From IMG/VR virus record IMGVR_UViG_3300042868_009074, positions 203,767 through 267,766 of that record: a stretch of DNA of 64,000 nt; one strand, written 5' to 3'. The notes below the pieces were generated by a model, which saw only the letters and a list, made by a program, of their open reading frames with translations, was not told where the DNA came from and did not search any database. Positions 3,505 to 24,814 of this stretch are shown here, piece after piece. The translations under genes were made by a program, and so were the position numbers. Within the stretch, counting starts at the first letter, position 1. The number at the start of each line of letters is the position of its first letter.

Positions 3505-4026
3505 ATGCTTAATCATTCTCAAGAATTAGTGGATAAATATCCACTACTCAACTGTACAAACTGTGGGATACCCAATCCCACGACTCAACAACAGGGTATG
3601 TTTATTGACGACGGTATTTCTATCAATACCTTGTCACTTGGACACTATGGCGGATTCACTGACTGCATCCCCGATCAAACTCGGGGTGAAGTGTACTCAA
3701 TTTCTGAGTATGATTCTAATCCATACCTAGCACATTTGTGCCATGACTGCAGTGTGATACTTTTCAATGCACTACCTGGACTTGCAAAATTTGCAGGAGT
3801 TCATGGTGGTCATGGCAACATCACCGGAGGATGGTGTTTCTCAGGTGGCGAACTTAGCCACATTGAGAATGGAACACTTGTTCCACCTTGTTGTCCATAC
3901 GCTTGGACTTGGGATCAGACTGAAAAGTCTGGTCCATACAATCAATCCACTACTTACATAGCTACACCCGAATTAACTTGGGTAAAGCGACAATATTTGG
4001 ATGATGACTTAGAGGATTTCCTCTAG
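3505..4026 (+). CDS. hypothetical Cys-rich protein
   Basis: 173-aa ORF with CxxC pairs. Confidence 0.75.
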   Translation: MLNHSQELVDKYPLLNCTNCGIPNPTTQQQGMFIDDGISINTLSLGHYGGFTDCIPDQTRGEVYSISEYDSNPYLAHLCHDCSVILFNALPGLAKFAGVHGGHGNITGGWCFSGGELSHIENGTLVPPCCPYAWTWDQTEKSGPYNQSTTYIATPELTWVKRQYLDDDLEDFL

Positions 4027-4272: not shown

Positions 4273-4787
4273 TGTTATTATCTATGATGATTATCTTAGC
4301 AATTACATCGTGTGCTTTAGAGCTCATGATTGCTGCTAAGGTTCCAATCTGGCGTCAAATGTCAGCTAAATATCCATTGTTCAACCTACTAAACTCTCTT
4401 GTTATCTCATTCATAATGGGTATAGCATTTGGTGCAGCAGGTCTTGTAGCAATGGGTGCTGGTGTTATCTCAACTGTACTTTCAGTTCCAGGTTATCAGT
4501 TCCTTAAATGGAACTATGACACACCTCGTGCTCGTGCACACGGTGGAAGTGAATACAAATATCACCATGCTATCTTTAAGTCTAAACTAGAAAACTATAA
4601 AGTTACCCTCGCTAAATGGGGTGTAGCTTTGAATGATCTAGGTAAACTTATGTATAGCTTTATCCGATTCCTTACTTTCCCTATCTGGATGACCCGCGAC
4701 TTTATCGTATGGGTTCGTCCATATGTGGTTAAGTATAACAACTATGTAGCTAGAAAACGTCTGGCTAAGATAAGGACAACACCATGA
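4272..4787 (+). CDS. membrane protein
   Basis: Overlapping TAATG start; several hydrophobic helices. Confidence 0.75.
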   Translation: MLLSMMIILAITSCALELMIAAKVPIWRQMSAKYPLFNLLNSLVISFIMGIAFGAAGLVAMGAGVISTVLSVPGYQFLKWNYDTPRARAHGGSEYKYHHAIFKSKLENYKVTLAKWGVALNDLGKLMYSFIRFLTFPIWMTRDFIVWVRPYVVKYNNYVARKRLAKIRTTP

Positions 4788-14864: not shown

Positions 14865-16544
14865 ATGACCGTTACCCTTAGACCCTACCAGCAAGAAGCT
14901 CTTGATGCTATCCTATTCCATGAAGGAAAAGGAATTAGTAAACAACTTGTAGTACTCCCTACTGGTGCCGGTAAAACAGTTTTGTTTTCTCATCTACCAG
15001 TTATTCGCAAGAACACTCTACCTATGCTCGTTCTTGCACATCGTGCAGAGCTATTAGAGCAGGCCCGCAATAAGATCATGGCATCTAACCCTACACTTAC
15101 TGTAGAGATAGAGCAAGCTGATCGTAAAGCTGGCCATGTAGACGTAGTGGTAGCTTCTGTAGCTACCTTAGGTCGTAGTGGCACACCCCGTATTGAAGGA
15201 TATCCTAATGACTATTTTAAGTCTATCGTTATTGACGAAGCCCACCATGCTGCTGCTCCTTCTTACAGAAGAATTGTTGATTACTTTAATCCTCCTTTTC
15301 TGTTGGGAGTTACGGCAACGCCGCAAAGGTCGGATTCGGTTAGACTCATTGATGTTTTCGATGAGATAGTTTACTATAAATCAATACAAGATCTCATTGA
15401 AGATGGCTGGCTTAGTCCCCTCATCGGATATAGAGTTAAAACAAATGTAGACATATCAGATGTCGAAATTAGAAACGGTGAATATGCTCAAGATCAACTC
15501 GAAGAAAAAGTGGATACTCCTGAGCGCAACGCTTTTGTTGTCGCTACCTATCGCAATTTGGCAATGGCTACGAAAGCCATTGTATTCGCATCCGGCGTTC
15601 GACACGCCGAAAACCTGGCCTTATCCTTTCGACAAGCGTCGGTAGAATGCGAAGTAATCGTGGGGACAACTCCTCACGAAGAACGTCAAAAGATCCTTCA
15701 GGATTTTTCTACGAATAAACTTAAAGTAATTGTCAATGTAGGTGTTCTCACCGAAGGTTTTGATGAACCCTCATTGGAAACAATTATCTTAGCTAAACCA
15801 ACCAGATCAACACTTCTGTATACTCAGATTGTTGGTCGAGGTACCCGTCTATTCGAAGGCAAAGAACATTGTACGATTATCGATATTGCAGACACCACGA
15901 GGGGGAAGAAGCCTATTGGCCTTCCTACTCTTTTGGGAATGCCACCAGAGTTCGATTTACAAGGACAGAGCCTAACAGACGTCGCTAAGAAGTATGAAGA
16001 GCTAGAAGACTATTGTCCTGGTGAAGCTATTCGTGTACTTAATCCAGATGATATTCAAGGTGCATACAAACGCATTAACTTGTTTATGCCACCACCACCA
16101 AACCCTGCTATCTTAGAATACTCTAAGTATGTATGGGCAGAGATCGGTGAAAACTCTTACCACCTAGGTCTTAATAATAATGAGTCCATGCATATAACAT
16201 TAGATGCTTTGGGTCGTTGGAATACTGAGCTTCATTATAAAGATAATGATAAAACTTCAGTTAAGATTATTGGTAGAGCTGATAATCTTAGATCAGTATT
16301 TTCCGGCACTGACAAATGGATTCAAGAGAATCGTGCAGCATCTTTAGTTCTAATCGATTCTTCTGCTCAATGGAGAACTGATGGACCTACTGATCCTCAA
16401 AAGAAAATGTTAAAGCGTTTAGGTATACCCCTTACTGCTGACATGACTAAAGGTATGGCTTCTCAAATCATATCTAAGTATTACGAAAACAATCCTAAGC
16501 CTAAATGGCTTCAAAATAAGATTGAATCTAAAAAACGTTGGTAG
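14865..16544 (+). CDS. superfamily 2 DExH helicase (Irc3/YejH-like)
   Basis: LRPYQ, PTGAGKT, DEAHH, TATPQR, VLTEGFD, QIVGRGTR. Confidence 0.92.
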   Translation: MTVTLRPYQQEALDAILFHEGKGISKQLVVLPTGAGKTVLFSHLPVIRKNTLPMLVLAHRAELLEQARNKIMASNPTLTVEIEQADRKAGHVDVVVASVATLGRSGTPRIEGYPNDYFKSIVIDEAHHAAAPSYRRIVDYFNPPFLLGVTATPQRSDSVRLIDVFDEIVYYKSIQDLIEDGWLSPLIGYRVKTNVDISDVEIRNGEYAQDQLEEKVDTPERNAFVVATYRNLAMATKAIVFASGVRHAENLALSFRQASVECEVIVGTTPHEERQKILQDFSTNKLKVIVNVGVLTEGFDEPSLETIILAKPTRSTLLYTQIVGRGTRLFEGKEHCTIIDIADTTRGKKPIGLPTLLGMPPEFDLQGQSLTDVAKKYEELEDYCPGEAIRVLNPDDIQGAYKRINLFMPPPPNPAILEYSKYVWAEIGENSYHLGLNNNESMHITLDALGRWNTELHYKDNDKTSVKIIGRADNLRSVFSGTDKWIQENRAASLVLIDSSAQWRTDGPTDPQKKMLKRLGIPLTADMTKGMASQIISKYYENNPKPKWLQNKIESKKRW

Positions 16545-16570
16545 TCAATACCACCTACGGAAACTATTCT

Positions 16571-18151
16571 ATGAACAATAAATTAACTAAATACATAACA
16601 GCATTAGTTATGTTAACTACGTTTACACTTACTAATGCTATTCCAGCCCAAGCTGCCCAAAACAAGGGCGGTTCAGAAATAACTAAACCCAATTCTAAAC
16701 CTAAGAAAAAGACTAACAAAAGAGTTAAGTCTCATTCTTATAAGAAAGTTGTAAAGACTAAGTCTAAAGTTGCTACTGCTAACTCTAAAGTTAAATTTAA
16801 ACTTTCTTTGTCCACAGCTATTCCTAAGATAGGTGCAGACTATTCTTATGATTCTGGTTATACTGGGCAAGGATCTTACGTTGTTGTCATTGATACCGGC
16901 GTAGAAAAAGCACATCCTTTCTTAGCCGATAAGATAGCTCTAGAAGCCTGCTTTGCTACTCGTTGCCCTAATGGTACCAATCAGATGATTGGACCAGGAG
17001 CAGCTGTCCCAGTGCATTATCACGGGACACACGTTGCTGGTATCATTGCTGGTAGCAACTCACAGTTTCATGGAATTGCCCCAGGTGCAAAGATCATAGC
17101 TATCAACATTTTTGACGTATATGGTGCAGCCTATGATGATGATATGGTTAAAGCTTTAAACTATGTCTACTCTTTAGCTGATACTTACAACATTACTTCA
17201 GTTAATATGTCACTTGGTGGTAACACTGTTTTTAGATCTACTTGCGATTCTTATCTTCCTGATGTTACTCAAGCTATTAACAATTTAAAGTCAAAGAATA
17301 TTGCTACAGTTATTGCTTCTGGAAACAATTATTCTGCTGGTATGTCAGCTCCTGCTTGTATCTCTACCGCCGTTAGCGTAGCTGCTACTTATACTTCTAC
17401 AGATAAAGTAACTACATTTTCTAACGTATCTCAGTTTACTACACTGTCGGCTCCTGGCTATGCCATTAACTCTTCTAAGTTGATGGGATCTTATGGTTCA
17501 GCTTCTGGTACCTCAATGGCAACTCCATTTGTTGCCGGAGCTTTAGCCGTGTACCGTTCCAAGTTTGGTGTCCAATCTGTAGATAAAGTTATTACTGACT
17601 TTCAATCTACTTCTTCGCCTGCTGTTGATGATTTCACTGGAATTATAACTAAGCGAATTAATATGAAGTCCTTGATTGATTCCACTACTACACCGGTTGT
17701 TCCTCCAGTAGTAACTACTACTACTATTCCAAATGCAACAACTACAACGTTACCTACTACAACAACTACTACTACTGTTCCGGTGACCACTACTACTGTC
17801 CCAGTAACTACAACCCTTCCTCCCGTTACTGGATATGCAGTAGGAAAACCATTGCTTGTTTCGTTAGACTCTATGTCGTCTGTCTATAACTCTTACCTCC
17901 ATGATGTATTCACGATTACATATCTTGATGTTTATTATGGCAAAGATGTTTTAACTCATTATCTATTGACTTGCGACAGTGGTCAAACGTTTACTATTCC
18001 AGTAGATTATACTGGCCGTTTAAACTATTATAGATTAAAGAATACAGATGGAACCTACGCTAAAGCTACAGGTATCATTAGGTGTTACCTGCAAGGTGCA
18101 GTAGGATCCTTTCTTGCTCCAAAATCTTGGTGGGAAGACGTCAATAGATGA
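16571..18151 (+). CDS. secreted subtilisin-like serine protease (S8) with Thr-rich linker
   Basis: Signal peptide; catalytic triad VIDTG, HGTHVAG, GTSMATP. Confidence 0.92.
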   Translation: MNNKLTKYITALVMLTTFTLTNAIPAQAAQNKGGSEITKPNSKPKKKTNKRVKSHSYKKVVKTKSKVATANSKVKFKLSLSTAIPKIGADYSYDSGYTGQGSYVVVIDTGVEKAHPFLADKIALEACFATRCPNGTNQMIGPGAAVPVHYHGTHVAGIIAGSNSQFHGIAPGAKIIAINIFDVYGAAYDDDMVKALNYVYSLADTYNITSVNMSLGGNTVFRSTCDSYLPDVTQAINNLKSKNIATVIASGNNYSAGMSAPACISTAVSVAATYTSTDKVTTFSNVSQFTTLSAPGYAINSSKLMGSYGSASGTSMATPFVAGALAVYRSKFGVQSVDKVITDFQSTSSPAVDDFTGIITKRINMKSLIDSTTTPVVPPVVTTTTIPNATTTTLPTTTTTTTVPVTTTTVPVTTTLPPVTGYAVGKPLLVSLDSMSSVYNSYLHDVFTITYLDVYYGKDVLTHYLLTCDSGQTFTIPVDYTGRLNYYRLKNTDGTYAKATGIIRCYLQGAVGSFLAPKSWWEDVNR

Positions 18152-18965: not shown

Positions 18966-19049
18966 GCCCGAGTGGCGGAATAGGCAGACGCAGGGGGCTT
19001 AAACCCCCCGGAGGGCAACCTCTTACCGGTTCAAGTCCGGTCTCGGGTA
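18966..19049 (+). tRNA. tRNA-Leu(TAA)
   Basis: GCCCGAG/CTCGGGT acceptor, GGGGG-CTTAAAC-CCCCC anticodon arm, long variable arm, GGTTCAAGTCC. Confidence 0.95.
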
Positions 19050-19570: not shown

Positions 19571-20803
19571 ATGTCTATTCTAGTATCTGAACTAGATCTT
19601 CCTTATGTACCACCTAAACTTATTAAATCTGATTTAACAACTTATGATCAATTTAAAATTGGTTTAGAAGCTCATAAGCAAAACTGGATTGGCACAACAA
19701 AACTTTCTTATGTGATTTTAGACCACAAGCATTCTGCTGCTATGTTGAAAGACAAGAGATGGCACAATGGTTTGTATTTATTAAGCGAACTTAATCCTCA
19801 TTTTACTGAAGAGATTAAGATGAGTAGGAAAAAATTAATAATTAACTTAGAAGGCGAAGATCATTCAAGACTCAGAAAGATAATTGCTCCAGTTTTTTCA
19901 CCAAAGACAGCTGAGCTTCTTCGACCAGACATGCAAGATGCTATCAATCAAGTTCTTAATGATGTCATCGAAAGCGGTCAATGCGATTTGCAAAAAGATG
20001 TATTCAACAAGTATCCATCATACATTATCTCTAAGATAGTAGGAGTCCCCAATTCAGATTGGGAGAAGTTTAGTCAATGGGCTGATGATACCTTCAAAAC
20101 ATTTGGTGGAAACTTTGAACACCATAGCGAAGTTATATTAAATACTCAAAATGAATTAGATCAATATACTAATAATTTAATCATCAGCAAAAAAGAAAAC
20201 AAAGGCAATGACCTTGTTTCTATGTTAATTGACGCAGAATTTGATGGTCAAAAATTATCAGATCAAGAAATACAATCTCTTATCCAAGTAGTTCTGATGG
20301 CAGGCATGGATACGACTAGAGCACAGCTTGGTCTTATAGCAGTTATGCTATCTGAGAGACCAGATTTAATATCGATGTTAGCCAATGATTTAAATGTTGA
20401 AGATATAATAGAAGAGTCTACTCGCTTAGATTCTGTTTTTAAATATGTAATGAGAATTGCTTCAGAAGACATTGAATACAATGGAGTCTTATTCCCTAAG
20501 GGAACAATTATCTCCCCAGCATTGGGTGTTAATAATTACGATGACTTAGCTTTTGAAAACGCATCTGAATTTATTCTTGATCGTAAAGCAACAAAGGGCA
20601 TTACCCTGTCTTATGGTGGTGGAATTCATTACTGTCTCGGTGCTTCTTTAGCACGAGCTCAAATGCAGGAATGTATGAAAGTTGTTGCAAAAAGAATGCC
20701 AGATTATAAAATTACTGGAGAAGTTCTTTATAAAGAAGCTTACGAATCAGTAGTCGGTCCAAGATCTATCCCTGTGACTTTTACACCTAACATTAAGATT
20801 TGA
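19571..20803 (+). CDS. cytochrome P450
   Basis: H.RLRK, AGMDTT (I-helix), ESTR (ExxR), YGGGIHYCLG heme ligand. Confidence 0.95.
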   Translation: MSILVSELDLPYVPPKLIKSDLTTYDQFKIGLEAHKQNWIGTTKLSYVILDHKHSAAMLKDKRWHNGLYLLSELNPHFTEEIKMSRKKLIINLEGEDHSRLRKIIAPVFSPKTAELLRPDMQDAINQVLNDVIESGQCDLQKDVFNKYPSYIISKIVGVPNSDWEKFSQWADDTFKTFGGNFEHHSEVILNTQNELDQYTNNLIISKKENKGNDLVSMLIDAEFDGQKLSDQEIQSLIQVVLMAGMDTTRAQLGLIAVMLSERPDLISMLANDLNVEDIIEESTRLDSVFKYVMRIASEDIEYNGVLFPKGTIISPALGVNNYDDLAFENASEFILDRKATKGITLSYGGGIHYCLGASLARAQMQECMKVVAKRMPDYKITGEVLYKEAYESVVGPRSIPVTFTPNIKI

Positions 20804-20806
20804 TAT

Positions 20807-21019
20807 ATGGACAGTCAAATAATTAAAGCACAGATGTCTTCTCTTATTGGTAGAAGGATAGAACTTGTTGATTGCACTGATGAGTTCACCCCAATGACAC
20901 CTGGTACCAAAGGAACTATATCTTATATAGATGATATTGGTACAGTCTTTGTTGATTGGGATAACGGATCTGCATTAGGTCTTATCCCTGGAATAGATAA
21001 ATGGAAGTATATTAAATGA
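20807..21019 (+). CDS. DUF4314-like small beta protein
   Basis: GRRIELV...GTKGTI..IDD.G.V.V.WDNG..LGLIPG.D. Confidence 0.75.
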   Translation: MDSQIIKAQMSSLIGRRIELVDCTDEFTPMTPGTKGTISYIDDIGTVFVDWDNGSALGLIPGIDKWKYIK

Positions 21020-21312
21020 CTATTACATTTGGAACACGGTCACTCGAAGGAGTGACATTAGAACACAAAACATTAGAAGAATCATTAGAGGCTTTTATGG
21101 CTGCTGATGGTTATAGAATAGATTTCATGTTCCCAGATGGAAGATTTCTTTTTATTCATCGGGGAGAATATGGCGATGACATTCCTGAAGAAAAGTTAAA
21201 TCACCCTGCATGGAGGAACTACAAACAAGCTGTCTCTAAAGTTCTTGTTTATGATCCTCAAAATTTGCACAACAATAATGACAACGTAACTTACGTTGAT
21301 TTTTCTTCTTAA
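21016..21312 (+). CDS. hypothetical protein
   Basis: 98-aa ORF. Confidence 0.7.
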   Translation: MTITFGTRSLEGVTLEHKTLEESLEAFMAADGYRIDFMFPDGRFLFIHRGEYGDDIPEEKLNHPAWRNYKQAVSKVLVYDPQNLHNNNDNVTYVDFSS

Positions 21313-21315
21313 GAT

Positions 21316-21418
21316 TTTAGCTAGTAGCGTGTTCGATTTACTATTTGGAATTCGGAACGATATTAATAGTTACACACAGCACGTGGGCCTATATTCCCCG
21401 TAACTACTACTAGCTAGA
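21316..21418 (+). ncRNA. structured RNA unit 1 of a tandem pair
   Basis: TAGCTAGTAG/CTACTAGCTA closing stem stacked on TAGTTAC/GTAACTA. Confidence 0.55.
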
Positions 21419-21423
21419 TAAGT

Positions 21424-21539
21424 TTGATGGTAGCTGGTAAATTCCTACTAAGCGATTTTCGCAGAAATAAGCCGGTGTGAATTGCTAACTAAAAGTAACG
21501 ATACTAGTGGCCCCATATCGCCCCGTTACCTACCATCAA
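21424..21539 (+). ncRNA. structured RNA unit 2 of a tandem pair
   Basis: TTGATGGTAG/CTACCATCAA closing stem stacked on GTAAC/GTTAC; same loop motif as unit 1. Confidence 0.55.
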
Positions 21540-21791
21540 TTAATTTAAATTTAAAGGCAGTATTTTTTATGAACTTTTTTGCTATGACTATGTGCATATC
21601 AATTGTTGGTGGAACAATACTTTGCATTATATATGATGCTTATAAATATAAGGACTGAATATGATTCATTCTATTAAACAACTTATTATCCGTATTCGTT
21701 TTAAACGAACAGCTAGACAACGTCATAAATCATACAATAAAATGCATCAGACTCCTTATGGAGTTCCCACTAGAAATCAAGGATATTACGA

Positions 21792-24737: not shown

Positions 24738-24814
24738 GCGGGTGTATCCCCTCACTCTTATAAAGTGTAGAAAGGGTAGTTGGTGGCACGCGGGTTCAAA
24801 TCCCGTCACCCGCA
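24738..24814 (+). ncRNA. D-armless tRNA-like RNA, anticodon TAT (Ile AUA)
   Basis: Perfect GCGGGTG/CACCCGC-A acceptor, GCGGG-TTCAAAT-CCCGT T arm, CACT-CTTATAA-AGTG arm only 5 nt after position 9. Confidence 0.6.

Follow-up and report, generated by a model that had tools for sequence, protein, structure and literature searches.

The gap at positions 21313-21568 of the analysed DNA, which contains no credible open reading frame (ORF), carries two non-coding RNA genes that belong to one previously undescribed family. The window, by which we mean the whole stretch of DNA analysed, is the final 64 kb of a 267,766-bp IMG/VR record with 37% G+C. The fold and the sequence of the two RNAs are new; their genomic niche and layout are of a known and unexplained kind, that of the small stable RNAs in phage tRNA clusters. 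Our preferred reading is that the genes encode processed, stable, trans-acting small RNAs. We give this reading a probability of roughly 0.5, since transcription, processing, stability, and trans action are all inferred and there are no data on the RNA ends, their stability, or a partner.

The gap lies between an ORF ending at 21312 and an ORF starting at 21569, and both units within it are read on the + strand, as are the tRNA genes and ORFs nearby. The tRNA genes of the window on this strand are located at 18966 (Leu), 22105 (Lys), and 22994 (Met), with an aberrant one at 24738. Pfam and PHROG gave no informative family among the neighbouring ORFs. The features of the locus, in which P1 to P4 denote helices, are as follows.

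21016..21312, + strand: upstream ORF, 98 aa, no family
21310-21312, + strand: TAA stop codon of the upstream ORF, 3 nt 5' of the first helix of the array
21316..21418, + strand: unit 1, S-type RNA module, 103 nt
21316..21327, + strand: unit 1, 5' strand of P1, partner 21407-21418
21328..21333, + strand: unit 1, 5' strand of the pseudoknot, CGUGUU, partner AGCACG at 21378-21383
21331..21358, + strand: unit 1, variable hairpin P2 (GUUCGA/UCGGAAC), minimum free energy (MFE) prediction only
21367..21373, + strand: unit 1, 5' strand of P3, TAGTTAC, partner GTAACTA at 21400-21406
21378..21399, + strand: unit 1, conserved core (3' strand of the pseudoknot at 21378-21383, invariant U21384, P4, loop, and C21399)
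21407..21418, + strand: unit 1, 3' strand of P1, partner 21316-21327
21419..21423, + strand: inter-module linker UAAGU, which reads GAUAAG with a 10-bp P1
21424..21539, + strand: unit 2, L-type RNA module, 116 nt
21424..21433, + strand: unit 2, 5' strand of P1, TTGATGGTAG, partner 21530-21539
21434..21439, + strand: unit 2, 5' strand of the pseudoknot, CUGGUA, partner UACUAG at 21502-21507
21440..21487, + strand: unit 2, P2 domain (AAAUUC.../...GAAUUGCUA, with inner stems)
21488..21494, + strand: unit 2, A-rich junction J2/3, ACUAAAA
21495..21500, + strand: unit 2, 5' strand of P3, GUAACG, partner CGUUAC at 21524-21529
21501..21523, + strand: unit 2, conserved core (A21501, 3' strand of the pseudoknot at 21502-21507, invariant U21508, P4, loop, and C21523)
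21530..21539, + strand: unit 2, 3' strand of P1, CTACCATCAA, followed by an A/U-rich tail
21569..21658, + strand: downstream small ORF, 29 aa, hydrophobic

Homologues were sought with exact and degenerate DNA patterns, with two covariance models (R1, built from 7 L units, and R2, built from 10 S and X units), and by synteny via a flanking 160-aa protein, the synteny search covering viral and metagenome contigs. In total, 27 distinct units of three types (S, X, and L) were identified. They come from approximately 15 contigs of one lake-water phage clade (~206-211 kb), and one further 3.1-kb contig with a unit had been binned into a 'Bacteroidales' MAG. The S type, which includes unit 1 of the window, is 79-125 nt long, and the L type, which includes unit 2, is 112-126 nt long; the X type is an S-like paralog of approximately 102 nt with a different apical loop. 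Some arrays additionally contain a hairpin, M, of 44-80 nt with its own covarying stem. Unit 1 has orthologues in L010, L141, L158, and L156, and unit 2 has them at 11 further loci. A relaxed gapped pattern scan returned 111 loci, among which L136 was the sole new true one; most of the remainder fell in coding sequence, often in collagen-like genes with Gly-Pro repeats. No unit was found near the gene of the flanking 160-aa protein in relatives with less than ~43% identity in that protein. The window DNA is present in approximately 20 lake-water or freshwater metagenome runs, and BLASTN and TBLASTN searches against 50,697 cultured-phage records gave no match for the region or for its P450 neighbour. 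The closest cultured-phage helicase was only 36% identical.

The arrays contain one to three modules and lie in the tRNA region, on the tRNA strand. The family is restricted to this single clade of uncultured phages, with one locus per genome. They were arranged as S-L (the window, L020, L141, and L156), S-M-L (L004, L010, L018, L136, and L159), S-X-L (L164, L165, and L163), L only (the other phage in the same record, and L014), or S only (L011 and L025). A complete relative of 205.9 kb with terminal repeats has exactly one S+M+L locus, which is placed among 7 tRNA genes on the same strand, and the unit of L011 begins 1 nt 3' of tRNA-Thr. As for the record itself, its gene order is doubled: the genes of 1-51 kb recur in the same order in 208-267.7 kb, where the proteins are 30-95% and the DNA 68-74% identical, and the record has two tRNA sets. 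The complete relatives with terminal repeats measure 205.9 and 210.8 kb. Based on the doubled gene order, the two tRNA sets, and these lengths, the record probably joins two related phages. The 'third copy' at 13.3 kb is therefore regarded as an orthologue in the other phage and not as a within-genome paralog.

The shared fold begins with P1, a terminal helix of 9-12 bp formed from the two ends of the unit; S and L units all have G-C as its innermost pair, whereas X units have a G.A mismatch there. P2 is a replaceable domain that differs between the types. Most L units conserve it as a helix of 9-10 bp, UAGUAAAUUCA/UGAAUUGCUA, that encloses inner stems, and unrelated sequence is found in its place in L020, L164, and L159; an insertion is present in the S-unit P2 of L156, a near-identical phage. 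P3 has 6-7 bp, and its 3' strand is continuous with the 3' strand of P1, with zero unpaired bases between them. Inside P3 lies an asymmetric internal loop with A and several further nucleotides on its 5' side and 0-2 nt on its 3' side, followed by an invariant G-U and then by P4, a 3-4 bp hairpin preceded by one invariant U. P4 occurs as GGG/CCC, GGA/UCC, GGC/GCC, GGUC/GACC, GAA/UUC, AGGA/UCCU, or GGAC/GUCU. S and L units share the apical loop CCYAUAUY, and X units have AAUU(U/C)C instead. Since the X paralog retains P1, the pseudoknot, the GU, and P4 with a different loop, CCYAUAUY cannot be the sole functional site.

The fifth helix is a pseudoknot formed between a segment of 3-7 nt that directly follows the 5' strand of P1 and the 3'-terminal nucleotides of the internal loop. 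Its 5' strand starts at an invariant C and its 3' strand ends at an invariant G. The pseudoknot was found in 27/27 units with 12 different strand combinations, including CGUGU/GCACG, CCCUG/UAGGG, CUAACAU/AUGUUAG, CUGAC/GUCAG, and CUAGCU/AGCUAG, and its mean length was 5.3 bp, compared with 1.8 bp when strands were cross-paired between units. For the 5' strand, pairing at the base of P2 is an alternative; in unit 1, the P2 base overlaps this strand. It is possible that the helices form in turn and not together, which would fit a switch or a ribozyme better. The variants gave no support for a tertiary pairing between the apical loop and either the internal loop or J2/3, nor for a kissing contact through the self-complementary AUAU.

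An initial annotation of this stretch, made from sequence alone, had described two adjacent structured modules, and most of that description held. The 10-bp closing stems with GTAG/CTAC ends were confirmed in both units by reading the sequence. In unit 1, the stem in its 10-bp form is TAGCTAGTAG (21318-21327) paired with CTACTAGCTA (21407-21416), and it lengthens to 12 bp (21316-21327 with 21407-21418), including one U.G pair. The swap of the stacked stem from GTTAC/GTAAC to GTAAC/GTTAC also held; the stem of unit 1 is really 7 bp, TAGTTAC/GTAACTA, and its 3' strand at 21400-21406 abuts the 3' strand of P1 without a gap. Likewise confirmed was the change of the 3-bp stem, now P4, from GGG (21385-21387)/CCC (21396-21398) in unit 1 to GGC (21509-21511)/GCC (21520-21522) in unit 2, around the loops CCTATATT / CCUAUAUU at 21388-21395 and CCCATATC / CCCAUAUC at 21512-21519. 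The claim that 'GAATT' in the variable arm is a shared feature failed, as AAUUC and GAAUU in unit 2 are the two strands of P2. The sequence common to the two window units is a 13-nt core only. The description was moreover incomplete, having missed the pseudoknot in both units. Its central claim, that the modules are paralogs selected for structure, was upheld, since the covariation between the two paralogs recurs across the 27 orthologous and paralogous units. The check that it had proposed, construction of a covariance model and a homologue search, was carried out and homologues were found; its refuting condition, absence of homologues with shuffled sequences folding equally well, was not met.

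The evidence for a structured RNA was both thermodynamic and comparative. Compared with dinucleotide shuffles, the MFE z-score was -2.3 for unit 1, with 5/200 shuffles folding as well, and -3.6 for unit 2, with 0/200. Such single-sequence evidence is modest by itself, and the case rests on the comparative data. MAFFT alignments that were not fitted to the structure were used for the L types (A5) and for the S and X types (A7). Because a joint MAFFT alignment misregistered the 3' helices, S and L were aligned separately and the helices were parsed by script. In A5, including the pseudoknot, 93.4% of the cells were paired, against 22-49% when the 3' partners were slid by 1-3 columns, and 11 pairs had changed on both sides, a number reached by 0/500 shuffles. 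The corresponding values for A7 were 89.1% against 30-52%, and 18/28 pairs had changed on both sides, again reached by 0/500 shuffles; by helix, these amounted to 9/12 in P1, 5/7 in P3, 2/3 in P4, and 2/6 in the pseudoknot. In the L types, both sides had changed in 4/10 pairs of P1 and in 3/6 pairs of P3, which was 100% paired. The pseudoknot cells of the L-type MAFFT alignment were also 100% paired, with two pairs changed on both sides. When 16 units were parsed by hand, five pair types were observed at position 7 of P1, and the P3 strands showed 100% pairing with their own partner, compared with 49% when cross-paired. Every helix was preserved by compensatory changes in orthologues from other phages.

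The S and L unit types are related. The R1 model, built from L units, recovered S units at E values of 1e-6 to 2e-2 (unit 1 of the window, 24 bits, E ~1e-3; with R2 this unit scored 113.5 bits), and the R2 model, built from S and X units, recovered L units at 22-28 bits (unit 2 of the window, E ~0.1). The model scores were 94-148 bits on the + strand and 9-12 bits on the - strand; unit 2 scored 116.7 bits with R1 on the + strand versus 9 bits on the - strand. Furthermore, P1 contains several U.G pairs, which would become A.C if the opposite strand were read. From the U.G pairs and the strand-asymmetric scores, the functional strand is + and the molecule is an RNA.

Around the arrays, the genomic context is variable. 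The arrays always start 3-4 nt 3' of a stop codon, and the placement of the array relative to orthologous genes varies in close relatives. The junction 'UAAGAU' was seen in relatives after differing upstream ORFs, and the linkers between modules in relatives are UUAAG, CUAAG, or UUCAG. The arrays end 20-35 nt 5' of a Shine-Dalgarno sequence and ATG. The downstream genes are unrelated among relatives and include the 29-aa hydrophobic ORF, a winged-helix protein, an ACP-like ORF, and a lipoprotein; since the flanking protein genes vary, there is no linked protein partner. L020 has a truncated relic, L018 has a degenerate L unit, and L156 has a mismatch in P1. Promoter-like sites (sigma-70 hexamers) numbered 25 versus 26.8 expected, and terminator-like sites (a GC-rich hairpin and a U-run) numbered 5 versus 3.5 expected. 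As both were at chance level and none lay on the units, an intrinsic terminator or promoter element was rejected as an identity of the units.

Comparison with known RNAs identified no match. A search with the 4227 models of Rfam 15 at the gathering threshold found only tRNAs in the window. At E<=10, nothing credible was found in 21200-21650, and at E<=5, nothing lay over the units in five homologous loci, so that the initial statement of no known family stands. The closest layout is that of RNAC and RNAD (species 1 and 2 stable RNAs) of phage T4, which are transcribed from its tRNA region and whose function is still not known (PMC3014915, PMC9697503). Since these two were described, phage tRNA clusters have been known to encode small stable RNAs. 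In both cases, two tandem small RNAs (119 and 139 nt in T4; 103 and 116 nt in the window) lie head to tail in a tRNA region on the tRNA strand. The order in T4 is tRNA-Arg, 1 nt, rnaD, 6 nt, and rnaC, compared with spacers of 5-6 nt in the present family, and the single nucleotide between the tRNA and rnaD recurs before the L011 unit. The layout of a tandem in a tRNA cluster, on the same strand and with spacers of a few nucleotides, is thus met. Homology was nevertheless rejected, as R1 and R2 with filters off reached no more than 14 bits on the T4 region without spanning rnaC or rnaD. RNAC has a canonical tRNA T-arm, CCGGGUUCGAAUCCCGG, that the window family lacks, and the pseudoknot and the CCYAUAUY loop of the family were not seen in T4.

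The units also resemble tRNAs in several respects: the 5' and 3' ends form a terminal helix, a second helix stacks on it via an unbroken 3' strand as the acceptor stem does on the T stem, and the units lie among tRNA genes, with one directly adjoining a tRNA. However, neither unit was called by ARAGORN or by Rfam RF00005 at E<=10, and a tRNA or tRNA-like identity was rejected. The family has no T-loop, D-arm, free 3' end, or CCA, and its stacked helices comprise 16-19 bp compared with 12 bp in tRNA. The pistol ribozyme resembles the family in topology only: in both, a segment lying upstream pairs, as a pseudoknot, with the 5' side of an internal loop in a hairpin farther downstream, next to an invariant G-U. 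The present family differs in its length (80-126 nt versus ~50 nt), in its G-U being on the other strand of the internal loop, in its possession of a closing helix P1 and a P2 domain, and in the absence of an Rfam match. Known self-cleaving ribozymes (hammerhead, twister, pistol, hatchet, and HDV-like) were rejected by the lack of an Rfam match; catalysis itself was not tested. The C4 antisense RNA of phages P1 and P7, like other phage small RNAs processed by RNase P, has a terminal stem and is cut from a longer transcript. The family has no Rfam C4 match and no complementary target in the record, and its architecture differs. A CRISPR or guide array was likewise rejected, as there are no near-identical direct repeats, no effector domains in the neighbouring ORFs, and no antisense match of at least 13 nt in the record.

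For transcription, the evidence is weak. In one public metatranscriptome, a 201-nt contig matches 21322-21412 with a single mismatch, C>T at 21377, an allele that the L010 and L141 units also carry. The match ends exactly where P1 of the L010 and L141 units diverges from the window. Beyond the part matching unit 1, the contig continues for 75 nt on the upstream side and for 35 nt on the downstream side. The neighbouring ORFs had no specific coverage in the same metatranscriptome run. The contig may represent a transcript of the S unit of a relative that was more abundant than its surroundings, a suggestion that rests on a single low-depth contig. It could also be a precursor, a read-through product, or contaminating DNA.

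Under the preferred reading, the array would be co-transcribed with the surrounding tRNA and ORF transcript. Host endonucleases, of the tRNA-processing or the RNase E kind, would then cut the short conserved A/U-rich flank and linkers, putatively in UAAGAU at the 5' flank and in UUAAGU and GAUAAG at the linkers. A processing signal in the linkers may exist and remains a conjecture, given that these are A/U-rich linkers within an A/U-rich genome. The freed RNAs of 80-126 nt would be stable through P1, which seals both ends. They are predicted to act in trans by showing a rigid pseudoknot core and the conserved apical hairpin to a protein or RNA partner, and the swappable P2 would not be the business end. 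As P2 is naturally swapped, it is considered dispensable for the shared function.

Five alternatives were weighed against this reading. The first, which we consider unlikely, is that the units are cis-acting, riboswitch-like aptamers or attenuators, in which the strand after P1 switches between the pseudoknot and the P2 base and thereby controls the next gene. In its favour are the position of the arrays 20-35 nt ahead of a Shine-Dalgarno sequence and ATG, the compact pseudoknotted fold with invariant junction nucleotides, and the presence of one strand with two mutually exclusive pairings; tandem aptamers have a precedent in glycine riboswitches. However, the downstream genes are unrelated across relatives, the first module of an array precedes another module and not a gene, and one unit adjoins a tRNA directly. 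In addition, no expression platform is apparent, with terminators at chance level and the Shine-Dalgarno sequence not sequestered, and no Rfam riboswitch matched.

Likewise improbable is a new class of self-cleaving ribozyme, which would process the array by cutting at the invariant G-U near the pseudoknot or at the module boundary. The tandem modules with short conserved linkers would fit this view, as would the clustering of invariant nucleotides (G/C, G-U, and GG) where P1, the pseudoknot, and P4 meet and the resemblance in topology to the pistol ribozyme, which is a lead only. Against it, no known ribozyme family matches, and a helix of 10-12 bp separates the core from the linkers, from which we infer that boundary cleavage by this core is geometrically unlikely. 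Moreover, the RNA-library contig is unbroken through the G-U and both boundaries, and in S and L conservation is highest in an apical loop. Of the functions that had been guessed at before, ribozyme and protein decoy are neither shown nor excluded, and a guide-RNA array is disfavoured.

That guide view holds that the variable arm pairs with phage or host targets, in the manner of the C4 RNA of P1 and P7 or of a guide array. The high variability of P2 on a constant scaffold is as expected for a guide segment. However, when the variable arms were compared with the 268-kb record, as had been suggested, there was no antisense match of 13 nt or longer; the matches found were at most 12 nt with E>=1, and host targets were outside this test. 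P2 is itself a folded helix with covariation, repeat-spacer units are absent, and so are genes for Cas, TnpB, or a reverse transcriptase (RT). We hold this explanation to be very unlikely.

Equally remote is the possibility that the units have no RNA function and are DNA-level recombination or insertion cassettes, or else decaying relics of tRNA origin that shift their place within the tRNA region. The shifting position of the arrays relative to orthologous genes and their start 3-4 nt 3' of the stop codon would agree with this, as would the L020 relic, the degenerate L unit of L018, and the P1 mismatch of L156. On the other hand, the G.U wobbles and the strand-asymmetric model scores fit an RNA and not duplex DNA, four to five helices including the pseudoknot are held by compensatory change in 27 units, and tRNA models do not match.

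Finally, an RNA component of a known ribonucleoprotein is very unlikely and largely refuted, although there are resemblances to each: a retron msr-msd (retrons have a1/a2 repeats and a branching G, like an end-paired closing stem followed by an invariant G/C) is opposed by the absence of the reverse transcriptase PF00078 from the 268-kb record in a search whose controls matched, a bacterial Y RNA (YrlA/YrlB) with Ro60 (Y RNAs occur in tandem near tRNA-like modules) by the absence of TROVE/Ro60 PF05731 from the record and of an Rfam YrlA match, and a phi29-type packaging RNA (pRNA is a three-way junction of ~120 nt with closed ends) by the absence of an Rfam pRNA match and by a phage of ~206 kb rather than a phi29-like 20 kb.

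A bolder reading is speculative, and we regard it as unlikely. In it, the modules would found a new class of phage RNA whose rigid pseudoknot core displays an anticodon-loop-like hairpin. The RNA would then mimic the anticodon arm of a tRNA, or act as a decoy, towards a host factor directed at such arms, for example a tRNA-modifying enzyme or a defence-system anticodon nuclease. The loop, CC-YAU-AUY, includes CAU or UAU, both of which are anticodons reading the isoleucine codon AUA, and the arrays are always found near a phage tRNA-Ile(UAU) gene. It is on account of this loop and this proximity that an anticodon-arm mimic is conceivable. It likewise remains possible that the core represents a new RNA with catalytic or ligand-binding activity.

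The window thus contains an unrelated family in a layout like that of T4 RNAC and RNAD. Its fold is far better defined through comparison, which draws on 27 natural variants, three paralogous types of module, and one naturally swapped domain and which gives five helices, the pseudoknot among them. Interest in the family is tempered by its narrow distribution and unidentified function, yet we rate it as moderately high, the comparison having resolved the fold in enough detail to allow direct experiments. Should the conserved hairpin turn out to act as a decoy, ribozyme core, or aptamer, the family would be directly relevant to the conflict between phage and host over the tRNA pool. The family adds to phage genomes a class of RNA with a complex fold that is absent from Rfam, and the tRNA regions of uncultured jumbo phages hold more than tRNAs.

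Some relatives carry a third element in their RNA arrays, hairpin M, which separates the S module from the L module. The lower stem of this hairpin covaries, and its inner part (GGCGCUU..UGGGAC..AGCGAC) is conserved. No copy of hairpin M is present in the window. The X modules, which are likewise placed between S and L, are S-like paralogs in which P1, the pseudoknot, the G-U, and P4 are retained and the apical loop is AAUU(U/C)C in place of CCYAUAUY. The linkers on either side of them are UUAAG, CUAAG, or UUCAG.

Additional elements in or near the arrays of related phages and contigs
L004:1963-2003, hairpin M
L010:690-747, minus strand, hairpin M
L018:775-820, hairpin M
L136:10150-10197, hairpin M
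L159:~3545-3625, hairpin M
L164:6083-6189, X module
L165:6083-6189, X module
L163:1100-1204, X module
L020:1015-1091, truncated L-like copy

The truncated L-like copy, which directly follows the stop codon of an ORF for a 160-aa Cys-rich protein, has lost its 5' half, with P3, P4, the loop, and the 3' strand of P1 intact. A complete S-L array is found 1.1 kb downstream of it. This copy suggests that the arrays undergo turnover or relocation. In a near-identical phage (L156:2720-2860), P2 of the S unit carries a replacement or insertion of ~30 nt, and P1 has an A.A mismatch (GTAG to GAAG). This natural variant shows that insertions are tolerated in P2.

The first module begins 3-4 nt past the stop codon of the upstream ORF, mostly as UAAGAU followed by UU at the module start, as seen in the window (21310-21315) and in the equivalent flanks of L004, L010, L025, L136, L158, L159, and L164. 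This junction is kept despite the upstream ORFs being unrelated. It remains unexplained; it could serve as a signal for processing, mark the boundary of a cassette, or simply reflect compaction. In the window, the upstream ORF contains, at its 3' end, a terminator-like hairpin that lies 18 nt upstream of unit 1; this hairpin is missing from the orthologous L018 locus. A short way upstream of the RNA locus are genes encoding a subtilase (E-value, 7e-34) and a cytochrome P450 (Pfam E-value, 9e-25).

Features around the RNA locus in the window
16538-18151, plus strand, subtilase gene
19571-20803, plus strand, cytochrome P450 gene
21282-21298, terminator-like hairpin CAACGTAACTTACGTTG followed by a T-run
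24738-24814, plus strand, aberrant tRNA-Ile(UAU)-like gene

The virus record (G000) is likely to be a join of two related phages. Gene order is duplicated within its 268 kb (G000:1-51000 versus G000:208000-267700), the two copies sharing 30-95% identity in protein and 68-74% in DNA. The record also has two tRNA sets, and relatives that are complete measure 206-211 kb and bear terminal repeats. The window (G000:203767-267766) belongs to the second phage of this presumed join, which is nearly identical to IMGVR_UViG_3300034283_001919. Outside the window, at the left record end (G000:149-971), tandem repeats of ~150 nt with ~67-74% identity were observed.

A 3157-bp contig (L141, CAZRFL010000175.1) carrying an S-L array and then tRNA-Ile(UAU) was binned into an 'uncultured Bacteroidales' MAG; either it is a piece of phage DNA binned in error, or it hints weakly at the host.

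The aberrant tRNA-Ile(UAU)-like gene reaches 35 bits with the Rfam tRNA model, is not called by ARAGORN, and is kept downstream of the arrays in several relatives (L004, ~2440-2520; L020, ~2510-2600; L025, ~4680-4760). Its D-arm is replaced by only 4 nt, and an extra arm of ~18 nt contains the D-loop-like GGGUAGUUGG. Five of the 14 tRNA genes in G000 end in ...AC followed directly by TATG (e.g., window 19050 and 23068; G000:9896, 10647, and 11639), and an ORF start codon therefore lies 2 nt past the tRNA 3' end. The tRNAs and ORFs of G000 are packed as a single transcript-like unit.
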